A DNA stretch of 18,448 nucleotides from positions 1-18,448 of the forward strand of contig MCFH01000196.1 in the NCBI GenBank assembly GCA_002104945.1, in the 5' to 3' direction. Position numbers and translations under genes: made by a program. Within the stretch, counting starts at the first letter, position 1. Each line of letters opens with the position of its first letter. The notes beneath the pieces are model-generated. The model was not told the origin of the DNA. It ran no database searches and was given only the letters and a program-made list of their open reading frames with translations. This stretch comes from Piromyces finnis finn. Lineage: Eukaryota; Fungi; Neocallimastigomycota. This document shows, one piece after another, positions 1-18,448 of this stretch.

Positions 1-306
1 GTTAGAAATTAATTTTAGTTAATTTCGGGGTATTTTATAATTATTTGGTATAGAATATTTGTTGTTAAAATAGTTTAATAGTTAATAATCAATAAATAGT
101 AATAATAAAAATATATTAGTTTGGTTAATAACTAGTTGTTAGTTTAGTAGTAGTAAATAATAAAAAGGTTAGTATAGTATAATAATAAGGTTGTTAAATT
201 ATTTATTTAATATAAGAATAAAATAATTGGAATAGTCAAGTTGAATAGTATAAATAATTGGGATATTAAATATTGGTTGACTATTTGTTGTTTATTAAGT
301 AGTAAT

Positions 307-3300
307 ATGAATACTAGATATAGAATGTTAGACAACCGTGACGATGGAATAGCTGGAGTCAGTGACGCAGGCTCTGAGGCGAGTTCCATGATGGATATTG
401 AGGATGAGACTGGTAAAAGCGTTAACACCAGGGGAAGACTCATCCCAAAACCTCCAAGATTTTCGGAAAAAGAAGTGAACTTCTTTACTTCCTGGCAAGA
501 TTGGAGAAATACTTTAAATATAACTTGAAGAAGATGCTACCGACGCCTACAAGCTGGATATCTTGGGATGCTACCTGGAAGGAACCGCCGCCGAATGGTT
601 TGCCGACTTAGAAAGAGAAGAAAGCCCCCTGTTGAACTCTACGAAGATTTATTGAGGCAATGAAGGCTCGCTTAAAAACTGCAACAGTGCCGATGTAGCC
701 AAAGTCGACTTGCAAAATTGAAGTCAAGTCAATTCAAGAACGTCATGGACTACTGCGAGAATTTGAAAAGATGGCTAGAGACTCGTCTTTAATGATGAAG
801 CAAAATCCATTTCTTTATGGAAGGTTTACCAACTTCAGTCAAGGAAAAAGCAAGCTCCTTTACCCAAGAATTAGAAAGTTAACTGAGTTAATTAATGTTG
901 TTGCTGCCAATGTAGAATAGAATGGAAAGTCTTCGGAAAGATCCTATGGATGTCGACGGAAAGAAGAACCGAAGATATAACAGAGACTTAGGATCAAGGT
1001 ACCTCTCTTATGGTGTAAAATATAGAAATTATGTAGACCAAGAAACCCACACCTCAGCTAAGCCTAGAAAATGTTTCTTCTGCAAAAGGACTGGACATAT
1101 TAAGAAGGATTGTCCTCAACTTAAGGATAAGGTTATAAATAGACCAAAAGCTTCATGGCTACTACCGCTGGAAGAAGAATGTTAAATGTTTAGAATTCTT
1201 TACAAGTAATAATGGTGTTATCTTAAGGCTCTTGTGGATTCTGGTTCGGACTTGACTTTTTGGATTGGAAAGCCGTGAAAGTACAAGATCCATTCCAAAG
1301 AATGTTTAAGGATAATTGTTGAAGGTATAGGTGGTAATGGATTCTTGAAGTATGAAACAATTCCTTATAATGAATATCAAGAATCATAAAGAATCCATTC
1401 AATTCTACCTTACTGATCTTCCTTCTGGTATTTCTGTCATTCTGGGTAAGAATTGGTTAAGAAAAACAGATCCTACAATTAGCTTTAAGGATCAAACTCT
1501 TGAATTCAAATCCGAATTCTGTTCTTTGAATTGCTGTGCTACTCCAGAAGACATGAAAAGAAGAAATCAAGAAGCACAATTGGCCAAAGAAGAAGAAAGA
1601 AGAAAAGAAAAGGAACTCGTACAAGAAATACTTAACAATTATAAGAATAGTTTAAAAATTAGAGAAAGTGAAATTAGAAAAAGAAATATAAAAATTATAG
1701 ATAAAAATAAAATTCATGTATTAAAAAGAAATGTAGTAAAAACTTAAAATTAAATAAAAGAATGTTCAAAAGTATATTGTATGTAGTGTTATTTCAAATG
1801 AAGGAAATAAAGGTGAAGATGTTGAAGAAAGTGTTGTAGAAATTCCTGATGTATATAAGGAATTTGAAAGTGTATTTGATGAAGTTGAGTGTAATGAACT
1901 ACCTCCACATCGAATATACGATTGTAAAATAAGATTGAAAGATAAAGATAACTTATTTTATGGTCCTTTATACCCTCTAACAGAAGAAGAAAGGAATACG
2001 TTAAAGGAGTATATTTCTGAAAATCTAGAAAAAGGATTTATAAGACCGTCTACTTCACCTGCTGGAGCACCTGTGCTATTTGTTAGGAAAAAGGATGGAA
2101 CTTTAAGATTGTGTGTTGACTACCGAAGACTCAATGAAAACACAATCAGGGATTCATATCCACTACCTCTCATATCTGAATTATTCGATAGATTAAGAGA
2201 AGCCAAAGTTTTTACTAAACTTGATCTCAAGTCTGCTTATAATCTAGTTCGAATAAATGAAGGTGATGAATATAAACTGCATTTAGGACAAGATTTGGTC
2301 ACTTTGAATATCTTGTCATGCCGTTTGGATTAAAAAACGCTCCTGCAACTTTCCAACATTTTATCAATGATGTTCTCGGGGAATACTTGGATGAATTCGC
2401 CTTTTCTTATATTGATGATATTCTTATCTATTCGAAAAACTTGGAAGAACACCGAAAGCATGTAAAGAAAGTTCTTCAAAGATTAAAAGAAAATGGCTTT
2501 ATGCGAAACTTAGCAAATGTGAATTTGAAACTTCAGAAACTACTTTCTTAGGGCATGTTATCTCAGATAAAGGAATCTCTATGGATCCAAAGAAGGTTAA
2601 AGCTATTATGGAATGGCCTGTCCAACATCTGTTAAAGAAGTTCATCTTTATTGGATTATGAATTATTATAGAAGATTTATTCCAAACTTTGCTAGTATTG
2701 CTAAACCGTTACATAATCTAACTAAGAAAGATGTCAATTTTCATTGGCCAGAAGAATGTAATGAAGCTTTTTGTATATTAAAGAAATTCTTTACCGAGGA
2801 ACCAATTTTAATTCATGCTGATCCTGAATTACCTTTTGTGGTTGAGACAGATGCAAGTAATTTGCAATCGGTGCCGTATTTATCTCAAAGATTACCGGAT
2901 AATAACGAGCTTCATCCAATTTGTTATTATTCAAGGGATTGACTAAATCGGAAAAGAATTATCCTATTTATGATAAGGAACTTTTGGCTGTTATTGAAGC
3001 TTTGAAACAATGGAGACATACTTAGAAGGAGCAAGCATCAATTTATGATCTATCGGATCATAAAAATCTTACCTTTCCAGAAAGCCTGAATATTGTCGCA
3101 AAGACAAATTCGCTGGAATTTGTTTTTACCGTTATGATTTCAAAATACAATATAGACCGGGTAAAGAAGGTGGAAAACCTGATGCTTTTTCAAGACGTCC
3201 TGATTATGAAAAGAAAAATAATAAAGAAGAGAAGAAGCCTATTCTGTTTGACAGTTAAAGAAATCGAAGATACTTTTATGTCTTGTGTCTATTCGAGGAA

Positions 3301-4735
3301 TCTTAAAGAAAGATTTAATTAAAGAAATTAAAGAAGATGAAGAAATTAAAGAGTTAATAAAATTCTACAAGGAAAATCTACCGCAAGTAAGAAGTATAAG
3401 AAGTTAATGAAAAATTTTAAGTTAAGCGAAGAAGGAATTCTTTTGTATAAAAGTTTAATTTATGTACCAAAGAAAATGAGAAATACAATAATCTCAATGC
3501 ATCATGACAATCCAATTCAATGGTCATTTTGGTATTATAAAACAAAAGAATTAATTACAAGAAACTTTGTTTGGATAAACATGACTCAAGATATAGTTAA
3601 GTTTATTGCTTCTTGTAAAGTTTGTGGAGCTGCTAAGGTTGATCGTCATAGACCTTATGACTTTTACAGCCGCTACCAACTCCCTGAAAGACCGTGGTCT
3701 TCTGTTTCTATGGATTTTATAACTGATTTGCCAAAGTCAAAGGAAAAAACAGTTATAATGGTTGTTGTGGATAGATTAACGAAGATGGCTCACTTTATTC
3801 CGTTTAGAATGATTCCTACTGCTCAAATTGCTGCTGATGTTTTTCTTTAGAGAAGTTTTTCGTTTACATGGTCTACCTGATGAAATAATATCGGATCGAG
3901 GAACCCAGTTTACTTCAGAATTTTGGCAAAAGATTATGCACTTTGTTGAACATAAAGCACAATATCTCGAGTGCTCATCATCCTCAAACAGACGGGCAGA
4001 CTGAACGTGTAAATAGTATTTTAGAACAATTTCTTAGATGTTATATTAACAAAAGAAAAGATAACTGGATGAACCTTTTGCCTTATGCTGAATTTGCGTA
4101 TAATAATACACTTCAGCAATCCATAAATCAAACACCCATTCTTTGCAAATTATGGGCAAAATCCAAGATTTAGTACGAAATTCCTGCTGATAGCGACAAT
4201 AGAAGAGCTAACAGGCACGCCTCTCAGATGCAAGAATAATATTAAATTTTTAAAGAAGAACTTAGAAAAAGCCAAGGAAGATATAAGAAGTATGCCGATG
4301 TATTAGACTTATTGGACCTAAGTTAAAGGTTGGTGACTTAGTTTGGTTTAAAGCGTCCTGACTTTACTTCCTAAAGGGACCTCCAAAATTAACAAATAAG
4401 AAACTTGGACCATTTAAGATTATTGAAAAAACAGGACCCGTTTCTTATAATTGGAACTACCAGAAAGTTTAAGATGTCATCCCGTTTTCCATATTCGAAC
4501 TTAGAACCTTATGTTGAAAGAGAAGTTGAAGTGAATGAATCAACTTCTAGAATTCCAAACATTGCTACCGATTCTGGCTGAAGGAAGAATTCCATTGAAG
4601 ATAGTTAGTGAAAAAGTTGTTAATGGAATAAGTACTACTTTATGGTTTGGAAAAACTTATTACCTTCAGAAAGTACATGGCTTAAAGAAGATGAAATCGA
4701 TGACCCTCAATTGATCCAGGAATACCTTAAAATAA
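307..4735 (+). pseudogene. gag-pol: gag-pol polyprotein of copy A, broken by many 1-bp deletions (possibly sequencing errors)
   Basis: CCHC knuckle [14 protein letters not shown] 1072-1113; protease ALVDSGS 1228-1248; [20 protein letters not shown] and YIDD 2408-2419; RNase H VETDAS; integrase [15 protein letters not shown] and [12 protein letters not shown]; GPF motif; chromodomain 4586-4732; stop TAA 4733-4735. The start ATG at 307 (alternative 325) is inferred. Confidence 0.93.
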
Positions 4736-4755
4736 GTCGCTCAGGGGCTCGACTT

Positions 4756-4766
4756 AAGAAGAGGGG
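4756..4766 (+). promoter_or_regulatory. Polypurine tract of copy A
   Basis: AAGAAGAGGGG followed by CA and then the LTR start TGTAAAATATT at 4769. Confidence 0.9.
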
Positions 4767-4768
4767 CA

Positions 4769-5006
4769 TGTAAAATATTGTATTAATAGAATAATGTATT
4801 TAATACGTATTTAAAATAATGTACAATGTATTGAATTAATGTACCGTAAATCTTTACAAAATTTATATCACAATACATTAACATAAATCTATGTGAAATC
4901 TAAAGTTACGATAAAATAATGTATTACAATACATTAACATAAATTTATGTAAATTTAATTTTATGATAAGATAAAGTTTTTGATGATAAAAAAATTTAAT
5001 TAAATT
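4769..5006 (+). repeat. Truncated 3' LTR (U3 only) of copy A
   Basis: Matches the first ~180 nt of B's 5' LTR (revcomp of ~10855-11048), plus an extra 56-bp segment. Confidence 0.9.
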
Positions 5007-5012
5007 ACTTTA

Positions 5013-5185
5013 TGTAATTATTGTAAACATTATTTTATCGTAACTTTAGATTTCACATAGATTTTATTTTAATGTATTGTGATATAAATTTTTGTAAAGA
5101 TTTACGGTACATTAATTCAATACATTGTACATTATTTTAAATACGTATTAAATATACATTATTCTATTAATACAATATTTTTACA
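5013..5185 (-). repeat. Truncated 3' LTR (U3 only) of copy B
   Basis: Starts TGTAAAAATATTG at 5185 on the minus strand after the PPT. It is the revcomp of 4769-~4940 apart from small indels. Confidence 0.88.
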
Positions 5186-5187
5186 TG

Positions 5188-5198
5188 CCCCTCTTCTT
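5188..5198 (-). promoter_or_regulatory. Polypurine tract of copy B
   Basis: Plus-strand CCCCTCTTCTT = AAGAAGAGGGG on the minus strand, 2 nt from the LTR. Confidence 0.9.
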
Positions 5199-5217
5199 AA
5201 GTGAGCCCCTGAGCGAC

Positions 5218-7067
5218 TTATAGTTTAAGGTATTCCTGGATCAATTGAGGGTCATCGATTTCATCTTCTTTAAGCCATGTACTTTCTGAAGGTAATAAGT
5301 TTTTCCAAACCATAAAGTAGTACTTAGTTCCATTAATAATTTTTCACTAACTATCTTCAATGGAATTCTTCCTTCAGCAGAATCGGAGCAATGTTTGGAA
5401 TTCTAGAAGTTGATTCATTCACTTCAACTTCTCTTTCAACATAAGGTTCTAAGTTCGAAATATGGAAAACGGGATGACATCTTAAACTTTCTGGTAGTTC
5501 CAATTTATAAGAAACGGGTCCTGTTTTTCAATAATCTTAAATGGTCCAAGTTTCTTATTTGTTTAATTTTGGAGGTCCTTTAGGAAGTAAGTCAGGACGC
5601 TTTAACCAAACTAAGTCACCAACCTTTAACTTAGGTCCAATAAGTCTAATACAATCGGCATACTTCTTATATCTTTCTTGGCTTTTTCTAAGTTCTTCTT
5701 TAAAAATTTAATATTATCTTGCATCTGAGAGGCGTGCCTGTTAGCTCTTCTGATTGTCAGCTATCAGCAGGAATTCGGTACTAAATCTTGGATTTTGCCC
5801 ATAATTTGCAAAGAATGGTGTTTGATTTATGGATTGCTGAAGTGTATTATTATACGCAAATTCAGGCATAAGGCAAAGAGTTCATCCAGTTATCTTTCTT
5901 TTGTTAATATAACATCTAAGAAATTGTTCTAAAATACTATTTACACGTTTCAGTCTGCCCGTCTGTTTGAGGATGATGAGCACTCGAGATATTGTGCTTT
6001 ATGTTCAACAAAGTGCATAATCTTTGCCAAAATTCTGAAGTAAACTGGGTTCCTCGATCCGATATTATTTCATCAGGTAGACCATGTAAACGAAAAACTT
6101 CTCTAAAGAAAACATCAGCAGCAATTTGAAGCAGTAGGAATCATTCTAAACGGAATAAAGTGAGCCATCTTCGTTAATCTATCCACAACAACCATTATAA
6201 CTGTTTTTTCCTTTGACTTGGCAAATCAGTTATAAAATCCATAGAAACAGAAGACCACGGTCTTTCAGGAGTAGGTAACGGCTGTAAAAGTCCATAAGGT
6301 CTATGACGATCAACCTTAGCAGCTCCACAAACTTACAAGAAGCAATAAACTTAACTATATCTTGAGTCATGTTTATCCAAACAAAGTTTCTTGTAATTAA
6401 TTCTTTTGTTTTGATAATACCAAAATGACCATGAATTGGATTATCATGATGCATCGAGATTATTGTATTTCTCATTTTCTTTGGTACATAAATTAAACTT
6501 TTATACAAAAGAATTCCTTCTTCACTTAACTTAAAATTTTTCATTAATTTCTTATACTTCTTATTTGCGGTAGATTTCCTTGTAGTATTTTTATTAACTC
6601 TTTAATTTCTTCATCTTCTTTAATTTCTTTAATTAAATCTTCTTTAAGATTTCCTCGAATAGACACAAGACATAAAGTATCTTCAATTTCTTTGACTGTC
6701 AAACAGGAATAAGCTTCTTCATCTTCTTTATTAATTTTTTCTTTTCATAATCAGGGCGTCTTGAAAAAGCATCAGGTTTTCCACCTTCTTTACCCGGTCT
6801 ATATTGTATTTTGAAGTCATAACGTGTTAAGAACAAATTCCATCGAATTTGTCTTTGCGATAATAATTCGGGCTTCCTTGGAAAAGTAAGATTTTTATGA
6901 TCTGTGTAGATCATAAATTGATGCTTAGCTCCTTCTAAGTAATGTCTCCATTGTTTCAAAGCTTCAATAACAGCCCAAAAGTTCTTTATCATAAATTGGG
7001 TAGTTCTTTTCCGATTTAGTCAATCCTCTTGAATAATAACAAATTGGATGAAGCTCGTTATTATCCG

Positions 7068-7109
<42 letters not shown>

Positions 7110-9769
7110 TTCGAGTGCATTTCTCCATCGATTATTATCCGGTAATCTTTGAGATAATACGGCACCGATTGCGAAATTACTTGCATCTGTCTCAACCACA
7201 AAAGGTAATTCAGGATCAGCATGAATTAAAATTGGTTCCTCGGTAAAGAATTTCTTTAATATACAAAAAGCTTCATTACATTCTTCTGGCCAATGAAAAT
7301 TGACATCTTTCTTAGTTAGATTATGTAACGGTTTAGCAATACTAGCAAAGTTTGGAATAAATCTTCTATAATAATTGCATAATCCAATAAACGACTGAAC
7401 TTCTTTAACAGATGTTGGCACAGGCCATTCCATAATAGCTTTAACCTTTTTTGGATCCATAGAGATTCCCTTATCTGAGATAACATGCCCTAAGAAAGTA
7501 GTTTCTGAAGTTTCAAATTCACATTTGCTAAGTTTCGCATAAAGACCATTTTCTTTTAATCTTTGAAGAACTTTCTTTACATGCTTTCGGTGTTCTTCCA
7601 AGTTTTTCGAATAGATAAGAATATCATCAATATAAGAAAAGGCGAATTCATCCAAGTATTCCCGAGAACATCATTGATAAAATGTTGGAAAGTTGCAGGA
7701 GCGTTTTTTAATCCAAACGGCATGACAAGATATTCAAAGTGACCAAATCTTGTCCTAAATGCAGTCTTATATTCATCACCTTCATTTATTCGAACTAGAT
7801 TATAAGCAGACTTGAGATCAAGTTTAGTAAAAACTTTGGCTTCTCTTAATCTATCGAATAATTCAGATATGAGAGGTAGTGGATATGAATCCCTGATTGT
7901 GTTTTCATTGAGTCTTCGGTAATCAACACACAATCTTAAAGTTCCATCCTTTTTCCTAACAAATAGCACAGGTGCTCCAGCAGGTGAAGTAGACGGTCTT
8001 ATAAATCCTTTTTCTAGATTTTCAGAAATATACTCCTTTAACGTATTCCTTTCTTCTTCTGTTAGAGGGTATAAAGGACCATAAAATAAGTTATCTTTAT
8101 CTTTCAATCTTATTTTACAATCGTATATTCGATGTGGAGGTAGTTCATTACACTCAACTTCATCAAATACATTTTCAAATTCCTTATATACATCTGGAAT
8201 TTCTATAACATTTTCTCTAACATCTTCACCACTATTTTCATCATTTGAAAGAACACTACATACAATATACTTTTGAACATTCTTTTTATTTAATTTTAAA
8301 TTTTTACTACATTTCTTTTTAATACATGAATTTTTATTTTTATCTATAATTTTTCTATTTTCTTTATTCCTAATTTCACTTTCTCTAATTTTTAAACTAT
8401 TCTTATAATTGTTAAGTATTTCTTGTACGAGTTCCTTTTCTTTTCTTCTTTTTTCTTCTTTGGCCAATTGCGCTTCTTGATTTCTTCTTTCCATGTCTTC
8501 TGGAGTAGCACAGCAATTCAAAGAACAGAATTCGGATTTGAATTCAAGAGTTTGATCCTTAAAGCTAATTGTAGGATCGTGTTTTCTTAACCAATTCTTA
8601 CCCAAAATGACAGAAATACCAGAAGGAAGATCAGTAAGGTAGAATTGAATGGATTCTTTATGATTCTTGATGTTCATGATTAAAGGAATTGTTTCATACT
8701 TCAAGAATCCATTACCACCTATACCTTCAACAAACTTATCCTTAAACATTCTTTGGAATGGGATCTTGTACTTGTCCACGGCTTTCCAATCCAAAAAGTC
8801 TAAGTCCGAACCAGAATCCACAAGAGCCTTAAGATACACTCCATTATTGACTTGTAATAGAATGTCATAAACATTTAACATTCTTCTTCCAGCGGTAGTA
8901 GCCATGAACGCTTTTGGTCTATTTATAACCTTATCCTTAAGTTGAGGACAATCCTTCTTAATATGTCCAGTCCTTTTGCAGAAGAAACATTTTCTAGGCT
9001 TAGCTGAGGTGGTAGGGTTTTCTTGGTCTACATAATTTCTATATTTTACACCATAAGAGAGGTACCTTGTTCCTAAGTCTCTGTTATATCTTCGGTTCTT
9101 CTTTCCGTCGACATCCATAGGATCCTTTCCGAAGACTTTCCATTCTACTTCTACATTGGCAGCAACAACATTAATTAACTCAGTTATCTTTCTAATTCTT
9201 GGGTAAAGGAGCTTCGCTTTTTCCTTGACTGAAGTTGGTAAACCTTCCATAAAGAAATGGATCTTTGCTTCATCATTAAAGGACGAGTCTCTAGCCATCT
9301 TTTCAAATTCCTCGCAGTAGTCCATGACGTTCTTGAATTGGCTTGACTTTAACTTTGCAAGTCGACTGTTGGCTACATCGGCACTGTTACAGGTTTTATA
9401 GCGAGCCTTCATTGCCTCAATAAAATCTTCATAGGAGTTCAACAGGGGGCTTTCTTCTCTTTCCAAGTCGGCAAACCATTCGGCGGCGGTTCCTTCCAGG
9501 TAGCATCCCAAGATATCCAGCTTGTAGGCGTCGGTAGCATCTTCTTCTAAGTTATATTTGAAGTATTTCTCCAATCTTGCCAGGAAGTAAAGAAGTTCAC
9601 TTCTTTTTCCCGAAAATCTTGGAGGTTTTGGGATGAGTTTTCCCCTGGTGTTAACGCTTTTACCAGTCTCATCCTCGATATCCATCATGGAACTCGCCTC
9701 AGAGCCTGCGTCACTGACTCCAGCTATTCCATCGTCACGGTTGTCTAACATTCTATATCTAGTATTCAT
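5218..9769 (-). pseudogene. gag-pol: gag-pol polyprotein of copy B; gag-PR-RT in one open frame, RNase H interrupted by a poly(A) insertion
   Basis: The ORF 9835-7577 runs unbroken through Gag (PKPPRFSG, knuckle 8948-8989), ALVDSGS and RT. A 1-bp loss in a G run near 7661 shifts the frame before YIDD. A 74-bp insertion plus duplication lies at 7058-7144. Integrase and chromodomain follow, with the stop at 5218-5220. Confidence 0.95.
7071..7131 (-). mobile_element. Very short poly(A)-tailed retroposed insertion (25 nt + A36) with 13-bp TSD
   Basis: TTATTATCCGGTA is duplicated at 7058-7070 and 7132-7144. The matching site in copy A (~2893-2905) is empty. The minus strand reads TCGATGGAGAAATGCACTCGAAGTT-A36. 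Confidence 0.9.
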
Positions 9770-10240
9770 ATTACTACTTAATAAACAACAAATAGTCAAC
9801 CAATATTTAATATCCCAATTATTTATACTATTCAACTTGACTATTCCTAATTATTTTATTCTTATATTAAATAAATAATTTAACAACCTTATTATTATAC
9901 TATACTAACCTTTTTATTATTTACTACTACTAAACTAACAACTAGTTATTAACCAAACTAATATATTTTTATTATTACTATTTATTGATTATTAACTATT
10001 AAACTATTTTAACAACAAATTATTCTATACCAAATAATTATAAAATACCCCGAAATTAACTAAAATTAATTTCTAACAAAAAAATTTTTTTTTTTTTTTT
10101 TTTTTTTAATATTAATATATTTTAGATAATCCCCGAATTTAATTCTATTATTAAATTCTCACTATAATTAATTTTTTTTTTTTTTATAATATTATTTTCT
10201 ATTACTATTCTTATACAAAGGTGAACTTCCTATTCTAATA

Positions 10241-11067: not shown

Positions 11068-13091
11068 TGTAGTAATTTCTTATTATTGTTTACAGAAATT
11101 ACTATCTACAATAATATTAACGAATAATATTGTAGTATTATTATGCGGAAATAAGAAGTATTGAACAAATTAGAATAGAAAATAGAAAGTAAAAATAAAA
11201 CTTATCGAGTTTATTATAAAGATTTATAATAAACAACCAAACACAAAGAGTCAAATGGGTCGTAAGTTTTTTTAGTTAAATTACTGATTTATTAGAAGGA
11301 TATTTTATTTAATTAAAAAGAAAAATGTATTTATGTTATTTATTATAACGTATTCCTTTATAATAATAACTCTTGAATTTCTAAGGAATTTCAAGAGTGT
11401 TTTATTTATAATTTTATTAAAAAATAAGGTTAAATAAACGGGTTCTAATCTTAACAAATAAAATGTTTAGGAAAAGACTAGAAGAAAAACCTAAACATGA
11501 TTTTCGATCAATATTCTAGTCATATTGATCTTCGTGTAATTTTAAGTAAAACCGAATGCTTCTTTAAAGCGAAATCGGGAAAACCTTAAAATTCCGATTC
11601 CTATTTTATCCGTGCTTAATACAATACATAAAATATAATTAATACATAATTTAAAACAATAAGTGTAATGAATATAGTTAGTCAAAATTAAATGTATAAG
11701 ATAAATAATAAGTAAATAAATTATTTATATTAATTAAATGTACATAAAAATTAATAATTAAATAAATTTATAAAGTTAATTAAATATATAAGAATATAGC
11801 AAGTAAATAAATTTTATATTTTATATAAGTGTATATAAAATTAATATTTTAAGTAAATCATAAGTATTAACTAAATGAATGAAATATTAAATAATTTAAT
11901 AAATTATTAGTAATAGTTGAATGTATAGAAAATAATAATTTAAATAAATTTGTATTAAATAATAAGAAATAATAATTATTCAATTATGAATAATTAATAT
12001 TTCTTATATGATGATGCGTTGACCGATATATTTTTGAATAATATAATATTTTATATAAATAATAAATTCTAATATTTATGATGAAACAATAAATTTAAAA
12101 TAAAATAAAATATGTTTTATAATTAACAAATAAATCACTCAAAAACTCGAAAATAAACTCTTTTTATTATGTTTAAATTATCTCTTTATTATATTTATAA
12201 TTTATTTATTGTCTATTTATTGTCCCCCCTTTATAAAGAAGAATTTTATCTTCCTTTTATACATTTTCATTTATTACATGTATTATTATTTTTAACTATT
12301 AAATGTTATTATTACTATTGTTATTATTTATTAAAATTAAAAGAATAAATTAAAATTATGTCTTAGTATTATAAAATATTATAGAATATTACTTATTTGA
12401 TTTTCTTATTACTTCAAAATGTTTAAATTTAGAAAAATTATTATAAATTATCATTGACTATCATTAAATGTATAATACCTTGAATAAAATAATTAAAATT
12501 TAAAATTAAAATAATATTAAAATAAAATTAAAATGAAATTAAAATATTAAAAGTATCAATTATTATAAACACTCATTTTATACAGAAACATAAAAGAGTT
12601 CTGTATTTTATCTTTGAAATTGTTATTATTGTTCTATTTCCAGGCTTTAAATTAATCACTTTTAGTAATAATTACTCAGTTATTTATTTGTTAATTTATA
12701 TATATAAGTTTGAAAGAATTTCTAAAGAACACTTGGATAAAACACTAGAATTAATAATTTAATGTATATCATTTTATTTTTTTTTAGTTTATTTATTCAT
12801 TTTTATTTACTTATTATTATTTTATTATTTTAATACATTTTTGGATTGAGTCGTTTTATTTTATTTAATAATTTATTTTATTATTATCTCTATTAAGTCG
12901 TTTTTTTATTCATAATTTATTATTTAATAAAGAGAATATTATTTATTTAAAAGAAAGGGTTATATTTCCATAAAATTATTATTTATTCATTTTTAAGGGT
13001 TATTATCTTTTATTTTTATTATAAGTCGCTATGGGTTAAGTCGTGTTTATTCGGCTAGTTTTTATTACGTTTTTATGTGAGTAGCGTATCA
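11068..13091. mobile_element. Insertion D: 2,024-bp non-coding TG...CA element with 6-bp TSD (ATGAAT); probable large solo LTR of another family
   Basis: ATGAAT at 11062-11067 and 13092-13097 flanks a segment absent from C's 3' LTR. Ends are TGTAG...TATCA with no TIR and no long ORF. There are degenerate ~91-bp tandem units (11710, 11801), an A-rich left part and a T-rich right part. Confidence 0.75.
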
Positions 13092-13107
13092 ATGAATACT
13101 AGAAATA

Positions 13108-13180
13108 ACTAAATTGTCTTAGTGGTTAGTAGCTAAGACTTTGAGTCTGAATGACACTAGTTCGAGACCTCATAGATACT
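13108..13180 (+). pseudogene. Degenerate tRNA-Gln(TTG)-like sequence / Pol III type-2 promoter in U3 of C's 5' LTR
   Basis: A-box-like TGTCTTAGTGG 13115-13125; B box GTTCGAGAC 13160-13168 at 45-nt spacing; anticodon arm TAAGA-CTTTGAG-TCTGA (4/5 pairs, TTG 13141-13143); T4 at 13182-13185. Acceptor, D and T stems do not pair, so it is not a functional tRNA. Confidence 0.7.
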
Positions 13181-13531
13181 ATTTTAAAAAAATTATAATT
13201 TTATTTTATTTTATTTTATTTTATTTTTAAATTTTATTTTATATGAAGATTATTGATTGGTTAAGAATTTTAAGTTGAAAAAATTTTATAAATTAATTTA
13301 AAAAATTTTTAGTATAAATACGAGTGAATTTTCCCAAATATTTTAAAGAATCGAGATTTTATTAATAAATAATTATATTATTAAACACTAACTTATTAAG
13401 TTAAATTCTATGTGTTTTTAATAATATTTTTATAAATTAATAATTTACAGAATATTTTAAAGTGTTAATATTACTAAGTTATTTAGTAAATATTATAATT
13501 TGTTTTATTGTTAAAGACACATTTCTTTACA

Positions 13532-16500
13532 CTAAGAAGTCTTCTGTTAACTTTTCTACTTCGTCTCTCTCAAATCAAGAACCAACTTCTGTTTTGACTT
13601 CTTTTTCTGATTCTAATATTCAATCCAATTCTATTCTCAAATCCGATTCAAACCTCTAAATCAGAACCCAATTCTTCTATATACTTCCGGATGTTCTTTT
13701 CTGACTTTGCTGATGTCTTCATGAATCTAAGCTGAAAAACTTCCTCCACACCGTCCATACGATTGTGAAATAAAACTCAAAGAAAATTCAAAACTGTTTA
13801 TGGACCGATTTATCCTCTAAACAGAAACCGAATCAATTGCTTTAAAGAATATATAAAAGAAAATCTCAAGAAAGGATTTATTAGAAAATCAAAATCGCCT
13901 GCGGAGCTCCTATTCTGTTTGTACCTAAGAAAAACGGTCAACTTCGTATGGTGTTGACTATCGCCAATTAAACTCCATAACTATTCCGTATTCTTATCCC
14001 CTTCCTCTTATACAAGATATGCTTGAACATCTTGGAAAAGGGAAGATTTTCTCAAAATTGGATTCTTCGTTCTGCCTATAACTTGGTCAGGATTAAAAGT
14101 GTGATGAATATAAAACCGCTTTTACTTGCAAGTTAGGTCATTTTGAATACTGTGTGATGCCTTTTGGGTTGAAAAATGCACCTGCTGTTTTTCAACATTT
14201 CATTAATGATGTTCTTGAAGACGTTCTTGGTAAATTCGCTTTCTCTTACATAGATGATATTATTATTTTTTCCTCTGATTATAATCTCATATATCTCATG
14301 TCAAAACTGTTTTGAAACTCCTGAGGATGCTGGCTCTATGCTAAATTGGAAAAATGCGAGTTCTTTGTTTCTTTTATTGATTTCCTTGGTCATAGGATTT
14401 CTACTGATGGTATTCACATGACCCAAATAAAGTTTCTTCTATTTTAAACTGGCCTACTCCATCTAATGTTAAAGAGGTTCAATCTTTTCTTGGTCTTGCG
14501 AACTACTACCGTCGATTTATTCCAAATTTTGCAAAGATCGCTCATCCTTTGCATAAACTTTTGAAGAAAAATGTTAATTGTATGGTCTAAAGAAGCTCAA
14601 GATGCTTTCGATTCACTCAAGTCCTTATTTGTTTCTGCTCCTGTTCTTATATTTCCTAATCGTGAACTTCCATTCATAGTCGAAACTGATTCAAGTAACT
14701 TTGCCATTGTGCTATTCTCTCGCAAGTCTCTCCAATTGATAATATGACCCATCCAGTTGCTTTCTTTCTCGCTCTCTTACTGGTCCTGAACGTAATTATC
14801 CAATATATGATAAAGAGCTCTTAGCTATCGTTGCTGCTCTTGAAACATGGCGTCATCTACTTAAAGGCTCTTCTTCTACTTTTAAGATTTACTCGGATCA
14901 TCGAAATTTACTCTATCAAAAGAAACCTGAAAAAATGTCTCAACGTCTTGTTCGCTGGGCTTTGTTTCTCTCTGAATTTAACTTTGTTATTATTTATCGT
15001 TCTGGTTCTTCTAACGGTAAGCCTGATGCTCTATCTCGTCGTCCTGATTATGCTATCAATTCGAATTCCTCTTCTGATGTTCCTTTTAATGTCTTCGCCC
15101 TGAAACTTTTGTGCCATTGTGACTTCTGTTTCGTCCATTAGTGATTCTTTCTTTCCGAATATATAAATGATGACTTTTACAATAAAATCTGTGAATATCT
15201 TGATTGTAGGAAACCTCCAATACCTCACCCTCAAATTGACAAATTTTCCTTAACATAGTTTTCTCCTTTTACTGACAGAATCTATGTTCCTCCAAATTGT
15301 CGTCTTTCAATTCTTAAACTCTGTCATGACTCTCCTTCAGCTGGTCATTTCGGAATAAAGAAAACATCTTCTCTTATTGCTAGAGATTCTGGTGGCCTTC
15401 TATTTCTTCTGATGTTAAAGACTACGTTCGTTCTTGTGAAGTTGTTGTCGTTCAAAAACCTTTCGTCATAAACCTTATGGTCTTCTGAATCCTCTTGATA
15501 TTGCTGAGCGTCCTTGGTCATCCATTTCAATGGATTTCATTACAGATTTGCCTTCATCTTCTGGTTTCACTTGCATTCTTGTTGTTGTTGATCGTCTTAC
15601 AAAAAGGTTCATCTCATTCCGTTCAAAAGTATTCCTTCCGCCGCCGAAACAGCCACAGCCTTATTGATAATATTTTCCGTTTTCATGGCCTACCTGAATC
15701 TATTGTCTCGGATAGAGGTTCTCAATTTACCTCTAAATTCTTCCAATCCATCTGTTCCTCCCTTGGCATTGAACTTAAGTTGTCTACTCCATTTCATCAT
15801 CAATCAAACGGTCAGACGGAGAGGTGAACTCCGTTATAGAACAAATTTAAGATGTTTCTCAAATTATAAAGGTTCAAATTGGAAAAGTTTTCTTAGTCTT
15901 GCAGAATTTAGTTATAACAACGTGGTCCAAGAATCATCCAAATTTTCTCCATTCTTTTTGAATTACGGCTTTCATCCAAAATATTCACCAGTTATTCCAG
16001 ACTTATCTAAAGTCCCAAGAGCAGAAGAGTTTACAAGAGATTTTAAAACTTTAATAATACCTTAAAAGAAAATTTAAAATCTGCCATGGAAACCCAGAAG
16101 AAGCATGCTGACAAACGTAGAAAAGAAGCTCCGAATTTTAAAGTTGGTGACAAAGTTTGGCTGGATAGTTCTTTAATTATCCACAAAGGAAATAAAAAAT
16201 TTAAGCCAAGAAAACTCGGCCCATACAAAATCTTGGAAAAAATATCAAATGTTACATTTAAATTAAGTCTCCCAAAATCTATTAAGATTCATCCAGTTAT
16301 TCATGTATCCAATCTCGAGAAATATGTCGAAGATAAATTTGGAAGATCTCAACCACCACCGCCACCTATTACCGTTGACAATGAAGAAGAATACGAAGTT
16401 GAAGAAATTCTGGATAAAAGAAGACATTACGGAAAATACAATACCTGATTAAATGGAAAGGTATTCAATCAATGAAGCTTCGTGGGAGCCTGAAGAAGAT

Positions 16501-16544
16501 CTAAATTGCAAGGGCTACTTAAAAAATTTAATAGAAAGAAATAA
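13532..16544 (+). pseudogene. pol: 5'-truncated pol of C (PR-RT linker, RT, RNase H, integrase, chromodomain), many 1-bp frameshifts
   Basis: LPPHRPYD; [13 protein letters not shown]; YIDD 14247-14258; VETDSS; GKPDALSRRPD; [15 protein letters not shown]; DRGSQF; HHQSNGQTER; GPYKI; chromodomain EYEVEEILD...W.GY...SWEPE at ~16389-16530, reconstructed across frameshifts. Confidence 0.93.
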
Positions 16545-16841
16545 AAAATAGTTAAAAAATTCAAATTATATTTATTATTATATTAAAATCACAATTATTA
16601 TTATTATCAAAACTTATTAATATCATTATCAATATCAATTTTATTATTAAACAATTTATTAATATCAAATTTATCAATATTTTATTTTTAACTTTAGTAA
16701 TATTAAAAAAAAAAAAATGTATTTTATTATATTAAATGTATTTTTATAATTAAGAAAATTCACTCCTTAGTTTAGTTTATTAAAAAAGAAAAACATATAT
16801 TTAAATATTAAAATTCTAGATTCGTCTGGTATCCGAATCCT

Positions 16842-16850
16842 GGAGGAGGA
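16842..16850 (+). promoter_or_regulatory. Polypurine tract of C
   Basis: GGAGGAGGA, then CCA, then the LTR start TGTAATG at 16854. Confidence 0.85.
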
Positions 16851-16853
16851 CCA

Positions 16854-17292
16854 TGTAATGAATACTAGAAATAACTAAATTGTCTTAGTGGTTAGTAGCT
16901 AAGACTTTGAGTCTGAATGACACTAGTTCGAGACCTCATAGATACTATTTTAAAAAAATTATAATTTTATTTTATTTTATTTTATTTTATTTTTAAATTT
17001 TATTTTATATGAAGATTATTGATTGGTTAAGAATTTTAAGTTGAAAAAATTTTATAAATTAATTTAAAAAATTTTTAGTATAAATACGAGTGAATTTTCC
17101 CAAATATTTTAAAGAATCGAGATTTTATTAATAAATAATTATATTATTAAACACTAACTTATTAAGTTAAATTCTATGTGTTTTTAATAATATTTTTATA
17201 AATTAATAATTACAGAATATTTAAAGTGTTATATTACTAAGTTATTTAGTAATATTATAATTTGTTTATTGTTAAAGACACATTTCTTTACA
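16854..17292 (+). repeat. 3' LTR of C, 439 bp
   Basis: TGTAA...TTACA, followed by the TSD AGATG. Near-identical to the 5' LTR. Confidence 0.93.
16874..16946 (+). pseudogene. Second copy of the tRNA-Gln-like/Pol III module, in C's 3' LTR
   Basis: Identical to 13108-13180 (A box 16881-16891, B box 16926-16934). Confidence 0.7.
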
Positions 17293-17900
17293 AGATGTAA
17301 AAAATCCTTACATGTTACATCACATAAAATACTTTAAACACAACTTAACCCTATTAATAAATATATAAAATTATGTGTAACCTAAATGTTCCCATAATAT
17401 TGTCTCCATTACAGTGCATCTATCTTTTTAATTGTGGCACATGCTTTTGTTTTTATTTTATGATGCACTTTTTGTGTGTTACTATAGTGCATCTATCCCT
17501 TTAACCATACCAGGTATTTCCTTTACCCTTTATAATGCACTTGATCTTGCTGGTATTTCCCTTATGATGCACTCTTGTCCCCACTATTAGAGACTGGTAC
17601 CAACTTTGGCCTACCAAGAACAAGGCCTCCCATAGATATAACCCGAGCGGCGACATGCCACGGGCATTACATATGCCCTAACGAATTAGGAAAGCTTACG
17701 CTTCCTCAAATTCTTTCTGCTCTAATCTTGCTCGGGAAAAAATACATAACCAGGAATTTAGTATGACCTAGATTTCTTGATCCATAAAGCCTAGATTTTG
17801 CCAGATTACTAAATTTTCCTGGCTAAACTTCTGCCTGAGGTCAAATTTCTTCTGGCTAAAAAGTCTGGCTAAAACGGCCAATATTAAACTTTAATTAATA

Positions 17901-18013
17901 ATAAAATTATAATGTAATTACTAATGTAATGTTTCTTAGAATAATCGTAGCATATAAAATAAAATTATAATGTAATTACTAATGTAATGTTTCTTAGAAT
18001 AATCGTAGCATAT
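17901..18013 (+). repeat. Tandem duplication, 58-bp period
   Basis: ATAAAATTATAATGTAATTACTAATGTAATGTTTCTTAGAATAATCGTAGCATAT at 17901-17955 and 17959-18013. Confidence 0.95.
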
Positions 18014-18378
18014 AGTATTACTAATTGACATTAGCCACATATTTTAGTATAAAAAGAAATTGTAAATGTATTATCAAAATCTTTGTAATTACCTTTATTA
18101 AATTAAATTTAATAAACATAATAAATAAACTTTATCAAACCTAAATTTACTTTTCATAAACAAACGCTAGTATCATTATTATAGTAACTATTTTTAATCA
18201 TTTCAACATATTTCTAATATTAAATACATTTAAAAATTATAAAAAATTGTTTTTTGAATTACTATTATTTTTTCAATAAATGAAATAATACTAATTATTA
18301 ATCTTTTTTTTTACATAATTTGATTATATTTACATGGTTTTGATTAAGTTTGTAAATATAATTTTAATATTACTTTTT

Positions 18379-18380
<2 letters not shown>

Positions 18381-18426
<46 letters not shown>

Positions 18427-18448
18427 TTCCGAGTGCATTTCTCCCATC
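18381..18448 (-). mobile_element. Second copy of the poly(A) retroposon 3' end, cut by the window edge
   Basis: T43 + AACTTCCGAGTGCATTTCTCCCATC. It matches 7071-7129 except for one extra C in each of two C runs. Confidence 0.85.

Follow-up and report, generated by a model that had tools for sequence, protein, structure and literature searches.

A tRNA-Gln-derived module in the LTRs of a Piromyces finnis chromovirus and its possible use as a polymerase III unit

The window analyzed here, i.e., the whole 18,448-nt stretch of contig MCFH01000196.1 from Piromyces finnis, is very AT-rich, with 12 to 18% GC in its noncoding DNA and 33 to 37% GC in the coding parts of its retroelements. On the plus strand, a degraded chromovirus-type copy of 4202 bp occupies positions 13091 to 17292 and is bounded by two LTRs. 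The 5′ LTR (13091 to 13531, +; 441 nt) was recognized as a direct repeat with 16857 to 17292, the 3′ LTR (+; 436 nt). The first 355 nt of this repeat (13091 to 13445 and 16857 to 17211) are 100% identical, and the remainder (13446 to 13531 versus 17212 to 17292) differs by five 1-nt indels in homopolymer runs, without any substitution. These indels look like long-read indel error, and the frameshift counts in the window may be inflated. The 3′ LTR has its TGT terminus at 16854 to 16856; from this copy, the terminus of the 5′ LTR is expected at 13088 to 13090, where those three bases differ. No target-site duplication was found flanking the element (13083 to 13090 and 17293 to 17297).

Between the LTRs lies a broken pol remnant (13731 to 16448, +). 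Its open pieces gave Pfam matches to RT, RNase H, integrase, and the Tf2-type SH3 domain (SH3_Tf2-1), in the order by which Ty3/gypsy chromoviruses are recognized, and the remnant ends in the start of a chromodomain. Pfam gave no match to the Chromo domain itself in the window copy; the last ORF is 68% identical to P0012 (BLASTP) and breaks after the first chromodomain residues, and PF00385 is present in relatives of the element. Compared with the 1016-codon open frame of the relative L242, the remnant covers residues 340 to 1016 only, and gag and protease are therefore missing. The same comparison reveals 6 frame switches, which is an upper bound since single-base indels may be sequencing errors, and 29 in-frame stops. 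The element is a dead, 5′-deleted chromovirus copy, yet one that was recently copied as a unit. That so many stops are found despite identical LTRs could mean either that the copy had long been dead when it was multiplied as a unit or that the LTRs were homogenized.

Upstream of the 3′ LTR, a polypurine-tract block (16820 to 16853, +; purine run at 16842 to 16850) is conserved in relatives. Within the LTR, a TATA-type block (13311 to 13325, +), presumed to be the polymerase II core promoter, is common to both LTRs of the relative L230 almost letter for letter. No TGG-type primer-binding site was found after the 5′ LTR. The leader (13532 to 13730) is pyrimidine-rich and recalls dictyostelid Skipper chromoviruses, in which a polypyrimidine tract stands in for the primer site (PMC5006619).

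Elsewhere in the window, a second Ty3/gypsy family (gag, protease, RT, RNase H, and integrase zinc finger) covers 57 to 4865 (+) and 5087 to 10020 (−). The two copies form a near-perfect 10-kb palindrome with arms 92 to 100% alike, interrupted only by small indels; this may reflect either a genuine inverted duplication or a chimera of long reads. The start of the LTR of this family (from about 4770) carries no tRNA-like module. A covariance model built from real tRNA-Gln matched weakly at 275 to 339 (+) and 9737 to 9801 (−), in the leader and gag start of the family; this match (15 bits, rough E 0.02), whose acceptor stem can pair, may be due to chance. Inside the palindromic element, at 7058 to 7144, there is a 61-nt insert (36 T plus 25 bases) with a perfect 13-nt target-site duplication, and the same 25 bases follow about 43 T at the window end (18381 to 18448). 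These T-run inserts look like the 5′-truncated ends of poly(A)-tailed non-LTR retrotransposons on the minus strand. Two further repeats, at 11659 to 11922 and 17900 to 18014, are an AT-rich tandem array whose period is about 46 nt and a 57-mer duplicated exactly in tandem.

The present study concerns a tRNA-Gln-derived module at 13108 to 13185 (+; core 13115 to 13170), of which an identical second copy stands at 16874 to 16951 (+). The module is placed 17 to 25 nt (about 20) inside the outer edge of both LTRs in sense orientation, and its GC content is 0.41 versus 0.12 in the remaining LTR. Since the TATA block, the usual polymerase II promoter, lies downstream (at a distance of ~130 nt), the module belongs to U3. 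Both the U3 placement ~20 nt from the LTR edge and the chromovirus nature of the carrier, as proposed in the initial annotation, were thereby upheld, the latter by the RT, RNase H, integrase, and SH3_Tf2-1 pieces. The A-box/D-loop-side block (13115 to 13129, +), with a T8-like base at 13115 and a D-loop-like TGGTTAG at 13123 to 13129, matches 8 of the 9 columns conserved in real tRNA-Gln. The anticodon-arm relic (13137 to 13147, +) has its loop at 13139 to 13145, TTG in the anticodon place, and 4 of 5 stem pairs. Further on, the B-box/T-loop-side block (13159 to 13169, +) matches 6 of 7 conserved tRNA-Gln columns. A T4 run (13182 to 13185, +) is found where the tRNA gene would end, which is weak evidence when taken alone, as T runs are common in AT-rich DNA; an (ATTTT)n run follows 3′ of the module at about 13198 to 13228. 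Reading of the sequence confirmed that the features first listed (spacing, C-U-TTG loop, 4/5 stem, T4, (ATTTT)n, and GC-richer island) are present in both LTRs. The promoter boxes, in contrast, stood as approximate matches: compared with the motifs as printed in PMC10886601, the A-box side has 4/5 of TRGCY plus YGG, and the B-box side, which had been called exact, has 4/5 of GGTTC.

The module is derived from tRNA-Gln, and chance is excluded as its source. For a motif consisting of TGGTTAG, 7 free bases, and the 11-base anticodon block, 0.01 occurrences per window are expected even when 2 mismatches are allowed, and two exact ones are present. The same motif was found in more than 120 places in IMG/VR; among the matches listed, 115 of 120 fall in tRNA-Gln(ttg) genes called by ARAGORN, all with the 7-nt spacer. 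Outside this motif, the right part of the module (13148 to 13187) scored 9.7 bits against a profile of 84 real tRNA-Gln, a set gathered with the window's own motif from giant viruses and phages rather than from the host. Neither the 2000 window slices nor the 2000 shuffles included one that scored as high. The left (acceptor) part was not significant against the tRNA-Gln profile. Furthermore, the D-loop to T-loop spacing is 38 nt in the module and 37 nt (81 cases) or 38 nt (3 cases) in real tRNA-Gln, and the T4 run begins 59 nt after TGGTTAG, where real tRNAs end 57 to 61 nt after it. Of 27 columns with at least 90% conservation among 49 real tRNA-Gln, the window module matches 24; each module version matches 18 to 25 of them, while 295 control slices reach a mean of 4.3 and a maximum of 11.

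The searches relied on two models, a profile HMM of the ~110-nt noncoding module built from its natural copies and the covariance model built from real tRNA-Gln. With the latter, the best match of every locus set fell on the module, with scores of 18.4 bits for the window, 16.6 bits for L124/L128, 13.0 bits for L242, and 11.5 bits for L239. In a comparison with about 300 reference tRNAs, four lineages had Gln as their best isotype. Thus, the tRNA-Gln derivation put forward earlier is borne out by the motif statistics, the profile and covariance scores, and the 24 of 27 conserved columns. A general covariance-model match was not obtained: no general model recognizes the module, and the tRNA-Gln-specific model alone does so, weakly (11.5 to 18.4 bits).

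That the module is a working tRNA-Gln gene, or else a chance look-alike, has a negligible probability for both taken together. A chance look-alike is ruled out by the score of the right part, the match to the 27 columns, and the motif expectation. A working gene is favored by the TTG anticodon loop with its 4/5 stem and by the D- and T-loop letters at natural spacing; however, ARAGORN found no tRNA gene in the window, and Rfam gave no tRNA match even at E ≤ 10 on a 99-nt slice. In the strict tRNA register, the window copy forms 7 of 21 cloverleaf pairs (acceptor 0/7; D 2/4, both G-T; anticodon 4/5; T 1/5). Across 8 versions, 37% of cells pair versus 43% in shuffles, so that the cloverleaf is without support in any lineage. 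Neither the cloverleaf fold nor the stability of the whole module was significant in the window copy (z −1.4 to −1.6). Rfam gave no match to 5S rRNA in the window or in the LTR. A match to a SNORD56-like C/D-box snoRNA at 13099 to 13154, overlapping the module (16.5 bits, E 0.31), was taken as chance.

Instead of the cloverleaf, the fold that has been kept appears to consist of two adjacent hairpins, the first of which is backed by compensatory changes; the structure predictions are suggestive in this respect. Hairpin 1 (13116 to 13139, +; arms at ~13116 to 13124 and 13130 to 13139) is a non-tRNA helix in the RNAalifold consensus and is also present in single-sequence folds. In this helix, 95% of cells pair versus 78% in shuffles (0/500 reach this value), 12 cells show double changes, and slid controls pair at 18 to 55%. 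The covariation is suggestive and not strong, because the compensatory changes come mainly from L230/L232. Still, such changes point to selection on a single-stranded structure and not on promoter boxes alone. The initial annotation had mentioned this helix as an alternative pairing; with its compensatory changes, it turns out to be the conserved fold. Hairpin 2 (13142 to 13172, +), in which the anticodon and variable region pair with the T-loop-like block, is seen in single-sequence folds of the window, L242, L230, and L239, and its register varies by lineage. The two adjacent hairpins gave z-scores of −5.0 for L242, −4.5 for L230, −2.8 for L239, and −1.6 for the window in single-sequence folds.

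The relatives are metagenome contigs with 3′ LTR starts, found via integrase C-terminal proteins at 62 to 79% amino acid identity. The module stands at the same position in six other LTR versions (seven with the window), in agreement with the earlier view that it moves with the element. In L242, L239, L230, and L232, an almost invariant polypurine block and LTR terminus, as in the window, are followed by a variable spacer of 15 to 28 nt and then by the module, which L230 carries in both LTRs. Two further versions, L124/L128 and L124:566-650, are diverged and decayed. L242 has retained its 1016-codon open frame, and module-bearing relatives have long ORFs. The polypurine block has an identity of 0.94 to 0.96 across the window, L242, L239, and L230 and is also present in L123 and L232. 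At the first anticodon position, the window has T, and L242, L239, and L230 have A. In L123 (2232 to 2400), the polypurine block is identical to that of the window, and the LTR start is unrelated and without the module; from L123, LTRs seem to have been exchanged within the chromovirus clade.

Mean pairwise identity among the three closest lineages is 0.96 for the polypurine block, 0.93 for the LTR terminus, and 0.61 for the spacer (13098 to 13114 in the window). Within the module, it is 0.96 on the A-box side, 0.81 over the next seven bases, 0.82 in the anticodon block, 0.53 in the variable stretch between the boxes, and 0.88 on the B-box side, and it falls to 0.39 in the tail (13170 to 13185). 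This contrast favors constraint on the box-like blocks, as far as alignments with 3 to 4 informative lineages and several decayed copies can indicate. It becomes weaker once the decayed copies are added to the few lineages, and with L230 included, conservation is fairly even over the whole module (0.62 to 0.80). The proposal that the boxes are better conserved than the neighboring U3 thus held for the three closest lineages (0.96 and 0.88 versus 0.61, 0.53, and 0.39). Likewise, the claim that the promoter-box-like blocks were kept while the cloverleaf was lost agrees with the 7/21 pairs and with the identities of the A-box (0.96) and B-box (0.88) sides.

Beyond these relatives, the exact 33-mer and 20-mer of the module were absent from IMG/VR, JGI metagenome contigs, and GTDB genome contigs. 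A degenerate 23-mer from three versions gave 83 metagenome matches, all of them AT-rich noise, with 0 tRNA and 0 full modules, and the polypurine/terminus anchor was absent from genome and viral contigs. Free-standing SINE-like copies of the module, for which the initial annotation had suggested a search, were found neither in the window nor in the relative sequences examined.

A gene of the tRNA-Gln(UUG) type, or a SINE head that descended from such a gene, was incorporated into U3 in the ancestry of this chromovirus clade and has since lost its tRNA fold. Since its capture, the module has been copied with every retrotransposition. Its occurrence at the same spot in related elements suggests a small polymerase III signal or a structured RNA used by the element. 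We tentatively read the module as a putative compact type-2 polymerase III unit or TFIIIC-binding site at the outer edge of the LTR, to which we assign a probability of roughly 0.4, the function being deduced from sequence. The retained A-box/D-loop and B-box/T-loop sides are the counterparts of an internal polymerase III promoter. The module might yield a two-hairpin RNA of 70 to 80 nt that terminates in the T run behind it. It might also, or instead, keep TFIIIC bound as a chromatin boundary directly upstream of the LTR TATA promoter at 13311 to 13325. The module cannot serve as promoter of the genomic RNA, given that T runs directly follow it and that the elements are 4 to 6 kb long. The role of alternative promoter once suggested for the module is thus excluded as regards genomic RNA, with T runs immediately after it and the TATA block 130 nt downstream.

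The polymerase III reading is supported by the tRNA-Gln ancestry of the module, by its fixed place across separate lineages, and by the box-like blocks being conserved like the polypurine tract while the flanks are not. The T run at the tRNA end, the sense orientation, and the separate TATA block downstream also argue for it, as does the precedent of small-RNA-gene promoters in the LTRs of Helenus and Cassandra (PMC10886601). On the other hand, general tRNA models are blind to the module, and the anticodon-arm relic is conserved (0.82), though a promoter does not need such a relic. The structure itself may be under selection, because the 5′ arm and loop of hairpin 1 share letters with the A-box side and because in L230/L232 the arms have changed together while the box letters drifted. 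The B-box-like block, too, is one arm of hairpin 2. Besides, T4 may be too short as a terminator in some eukaryotes, which also counts against polymerase III.

The same structural evidence could instead describe a cis-acting element of the long RNA or of the replication intermediates. Here, a double hairpin 3′ of the polypurine tract, in the 3′ untranslated U3, would serve stability, packaging, pairing, or plus-strand priming; the tRNA letters would be historical, and no polymerase III would be involved. We consider this, the main rival reading, somewhat unlikely. It would account for the compensatory changes in hairpin 1 (95% paired, 0/500 shuffles, slid controls at 18 to 55%), the strong two-hairpin z-scores in L242, L230, and L239, the even conservation over the module once L230 is included (0.62 to 0.80), and the fixed place adjoining the polypurine tract. 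However, the letters in the loop of hairpin 1 and in the T-loop-like block have kept their likeness to tRNA from lineage to lineage, which is superfluous for a plain stem-loop. The window copy, moreover, folds modestly (z −1.6), and the compensatory changes come essentially from one lineage (L230/L232). It is improbable, to a greater degree, that the module is a neutral passenger, i.e., a tRNA gene or SINE that landed in the ancestral LTR and has no function, with its conservation reflecting shared ancestry and a small sample. Many of the G and C positions of the module are gone in older, decayed copies (the L128/L124 version, L124:566-650, and L232), and L123, which has the same polypurine block and an LTR without the module, implies that an element can dispense with it. 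In addition, tRNA-like pieces occur in many Repbase LTRs, according to Kojima (PMC10886601). A passenger becomes less likely because the module contrasts with saturated flanks: in the same lineages, spacer and tail are at 0.39 to 0.61 and the module blocks at 0.81 to 0.96. The compensatory changes in hairpin 1 speak against it as well, and so does the retention of the module both in L242, whose lineage has a long open pol frame, and in an element with identical LTRs that was copied recently.

A link with priming appears highly improbable. The tRNA-like stretch would in this case pair with the leader or primer-binding region, as a self-priming or bipartite site, or would supply the primer. The missing canonical TGG-type primer-binding site after the 5′ LTR and an 8-nt complement between 13117 to 13124 and 13530 to 13537 could be taken in its favor, but 174 of 500 shuffles gave a complement as good, and L230 has none (339 of 500 shuffles as good). 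Self-priming and a bipartite primer site were rejected, as the complementarity between module and leader is at chance level.

Among known systems, Helenus comes closest to the window module. Helenus elements are TRIMs of 311 to 1263 bp with tRNA-like LTRs in which the box A and box B regions are conserved (Kojima 2024, PMC10886601). Helenus, Cassandra, and Ajax are grouped as TRIMp3, and Kojima proposed the insertion of a SINE2 into an LTR as the origin of Helenus and argued that the autonomous partners must use polymerase II alone (PMC10886601). The window module shares with Helenus a tRNA-derived LTR insert with best-kept box A and B regions, usually no working tRNA, a polypurine tract, and fungi among the hosts. 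In contrast, Helenus is noncoding and thought to be wholly transcribed by polymerase III, whereas the carrier in the window belongs to a coding-type chromovirus lineage and is 4.2 kb long with pol remnants. The window LTR also differs in its separate TATA block, the T runs immediately after the module, and the two-hairpin refold. A target-site duplication, of 4 to 5 bp in Helenus, was not found around the window element; fungal Helenus, furthermore, is linked to Copia helpers, whereas the window element is Gypsy. While TRIMs are shorter than about 1.3 kb and noncoding between their LTRs, this element has 4202 bp with RT, RNase H, and integrase remnants. Therefore, the insert is Helenus-like at the sequence level, but the element lies outside Helenus.

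Cassandra, offered in the initial annotation as the analogue, remains apt in having a small-RNA-gene promoter in its LTR, although Helenus (PMC10886601) is closer and Cassandra further away. Like Cassandra and Ajax, the window element has such a sequence in both LTRs, copied at each retrotransposition. Cassandra, however, derives it from 5S rRNA (type 1 promoter) and is a short noncoding carrier. It is transcribed from its own promoter, and its polymerase III transcript is the template of transposition (PMC10886601), which cannot hold for the window module. The heads of tRNA-derived SINEs (SINE2) resemble the module in being degenerate tRNAs that have kept A and B boxes and lost the cloverleaf; unlike them, the module has no LINE-derived tail, moves within the LTR, and has no free-standing copy in the sequences examined. 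The chromoviruses that adjoin tRNA genes (dictyostelid Skipper-2 and DGLT-A, Ty3, and S. japonicus Tj1) are likewise chromodomain-bearing Ty3/gypsy elements of compact, AT-rich genomes. Skipper-2 insertions are found 7 to 133 bp downstream of tRNA genes; a canonical primer-binding site is missing from many Skipper elements, where a pyrimidine tract takes its place (PMC5006619). The window element, too, is without a canonical site and pyrimidine-rich after 13531. In those chromoviruses, though, the tRNA gene belongs to the host and is a target external to the element, whereas the tRNA-like sequence in the window is inside the LTR and duplicated with it. By analogy, insertion adjoining tRNA genes may be a plausible route by which the module was captured. 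The type-2 polymerase III units that produce hairpin RNAs, such as the BLV miRNA cluster (PMC12498455), are similar in combining compact internal A/B-box promoters with hairpin-forming retroelement sequence; they belong to animal viruses (retroviral/herpesviral), and the likeness is one of analogy only.

So far, small-RNA-gene promoters in LTRs are known only from tiny noncoding TRIMs (Cassandra, Helenus, and Ajax). Here, a tRNA-derived module stands in the LTR of a coding-type chromovirus beside a TATA promoter. In AT-rich genomes, a module of this kind can give rise to false tRNA or SINE calls. A bolder proposal, which we regard as doubtful, is that coding-type chromoviruses have domesticated a tRNA-Gln gene as a portable polymerase III mini-unit, for a two-hairpin small RNA or a TFIIIC boundary, and would be the autonomous relatives from which Helenus-type TRIMp3 arise by internal deletion. 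If the module is active, this would be a full-size LTR retrotransposon with two polymerase systems in one LTR. It would also offer a natural case for tDNA-like boundaries or small-RNA sources in mobile DNA, and a plausible origin of TRIMp3.
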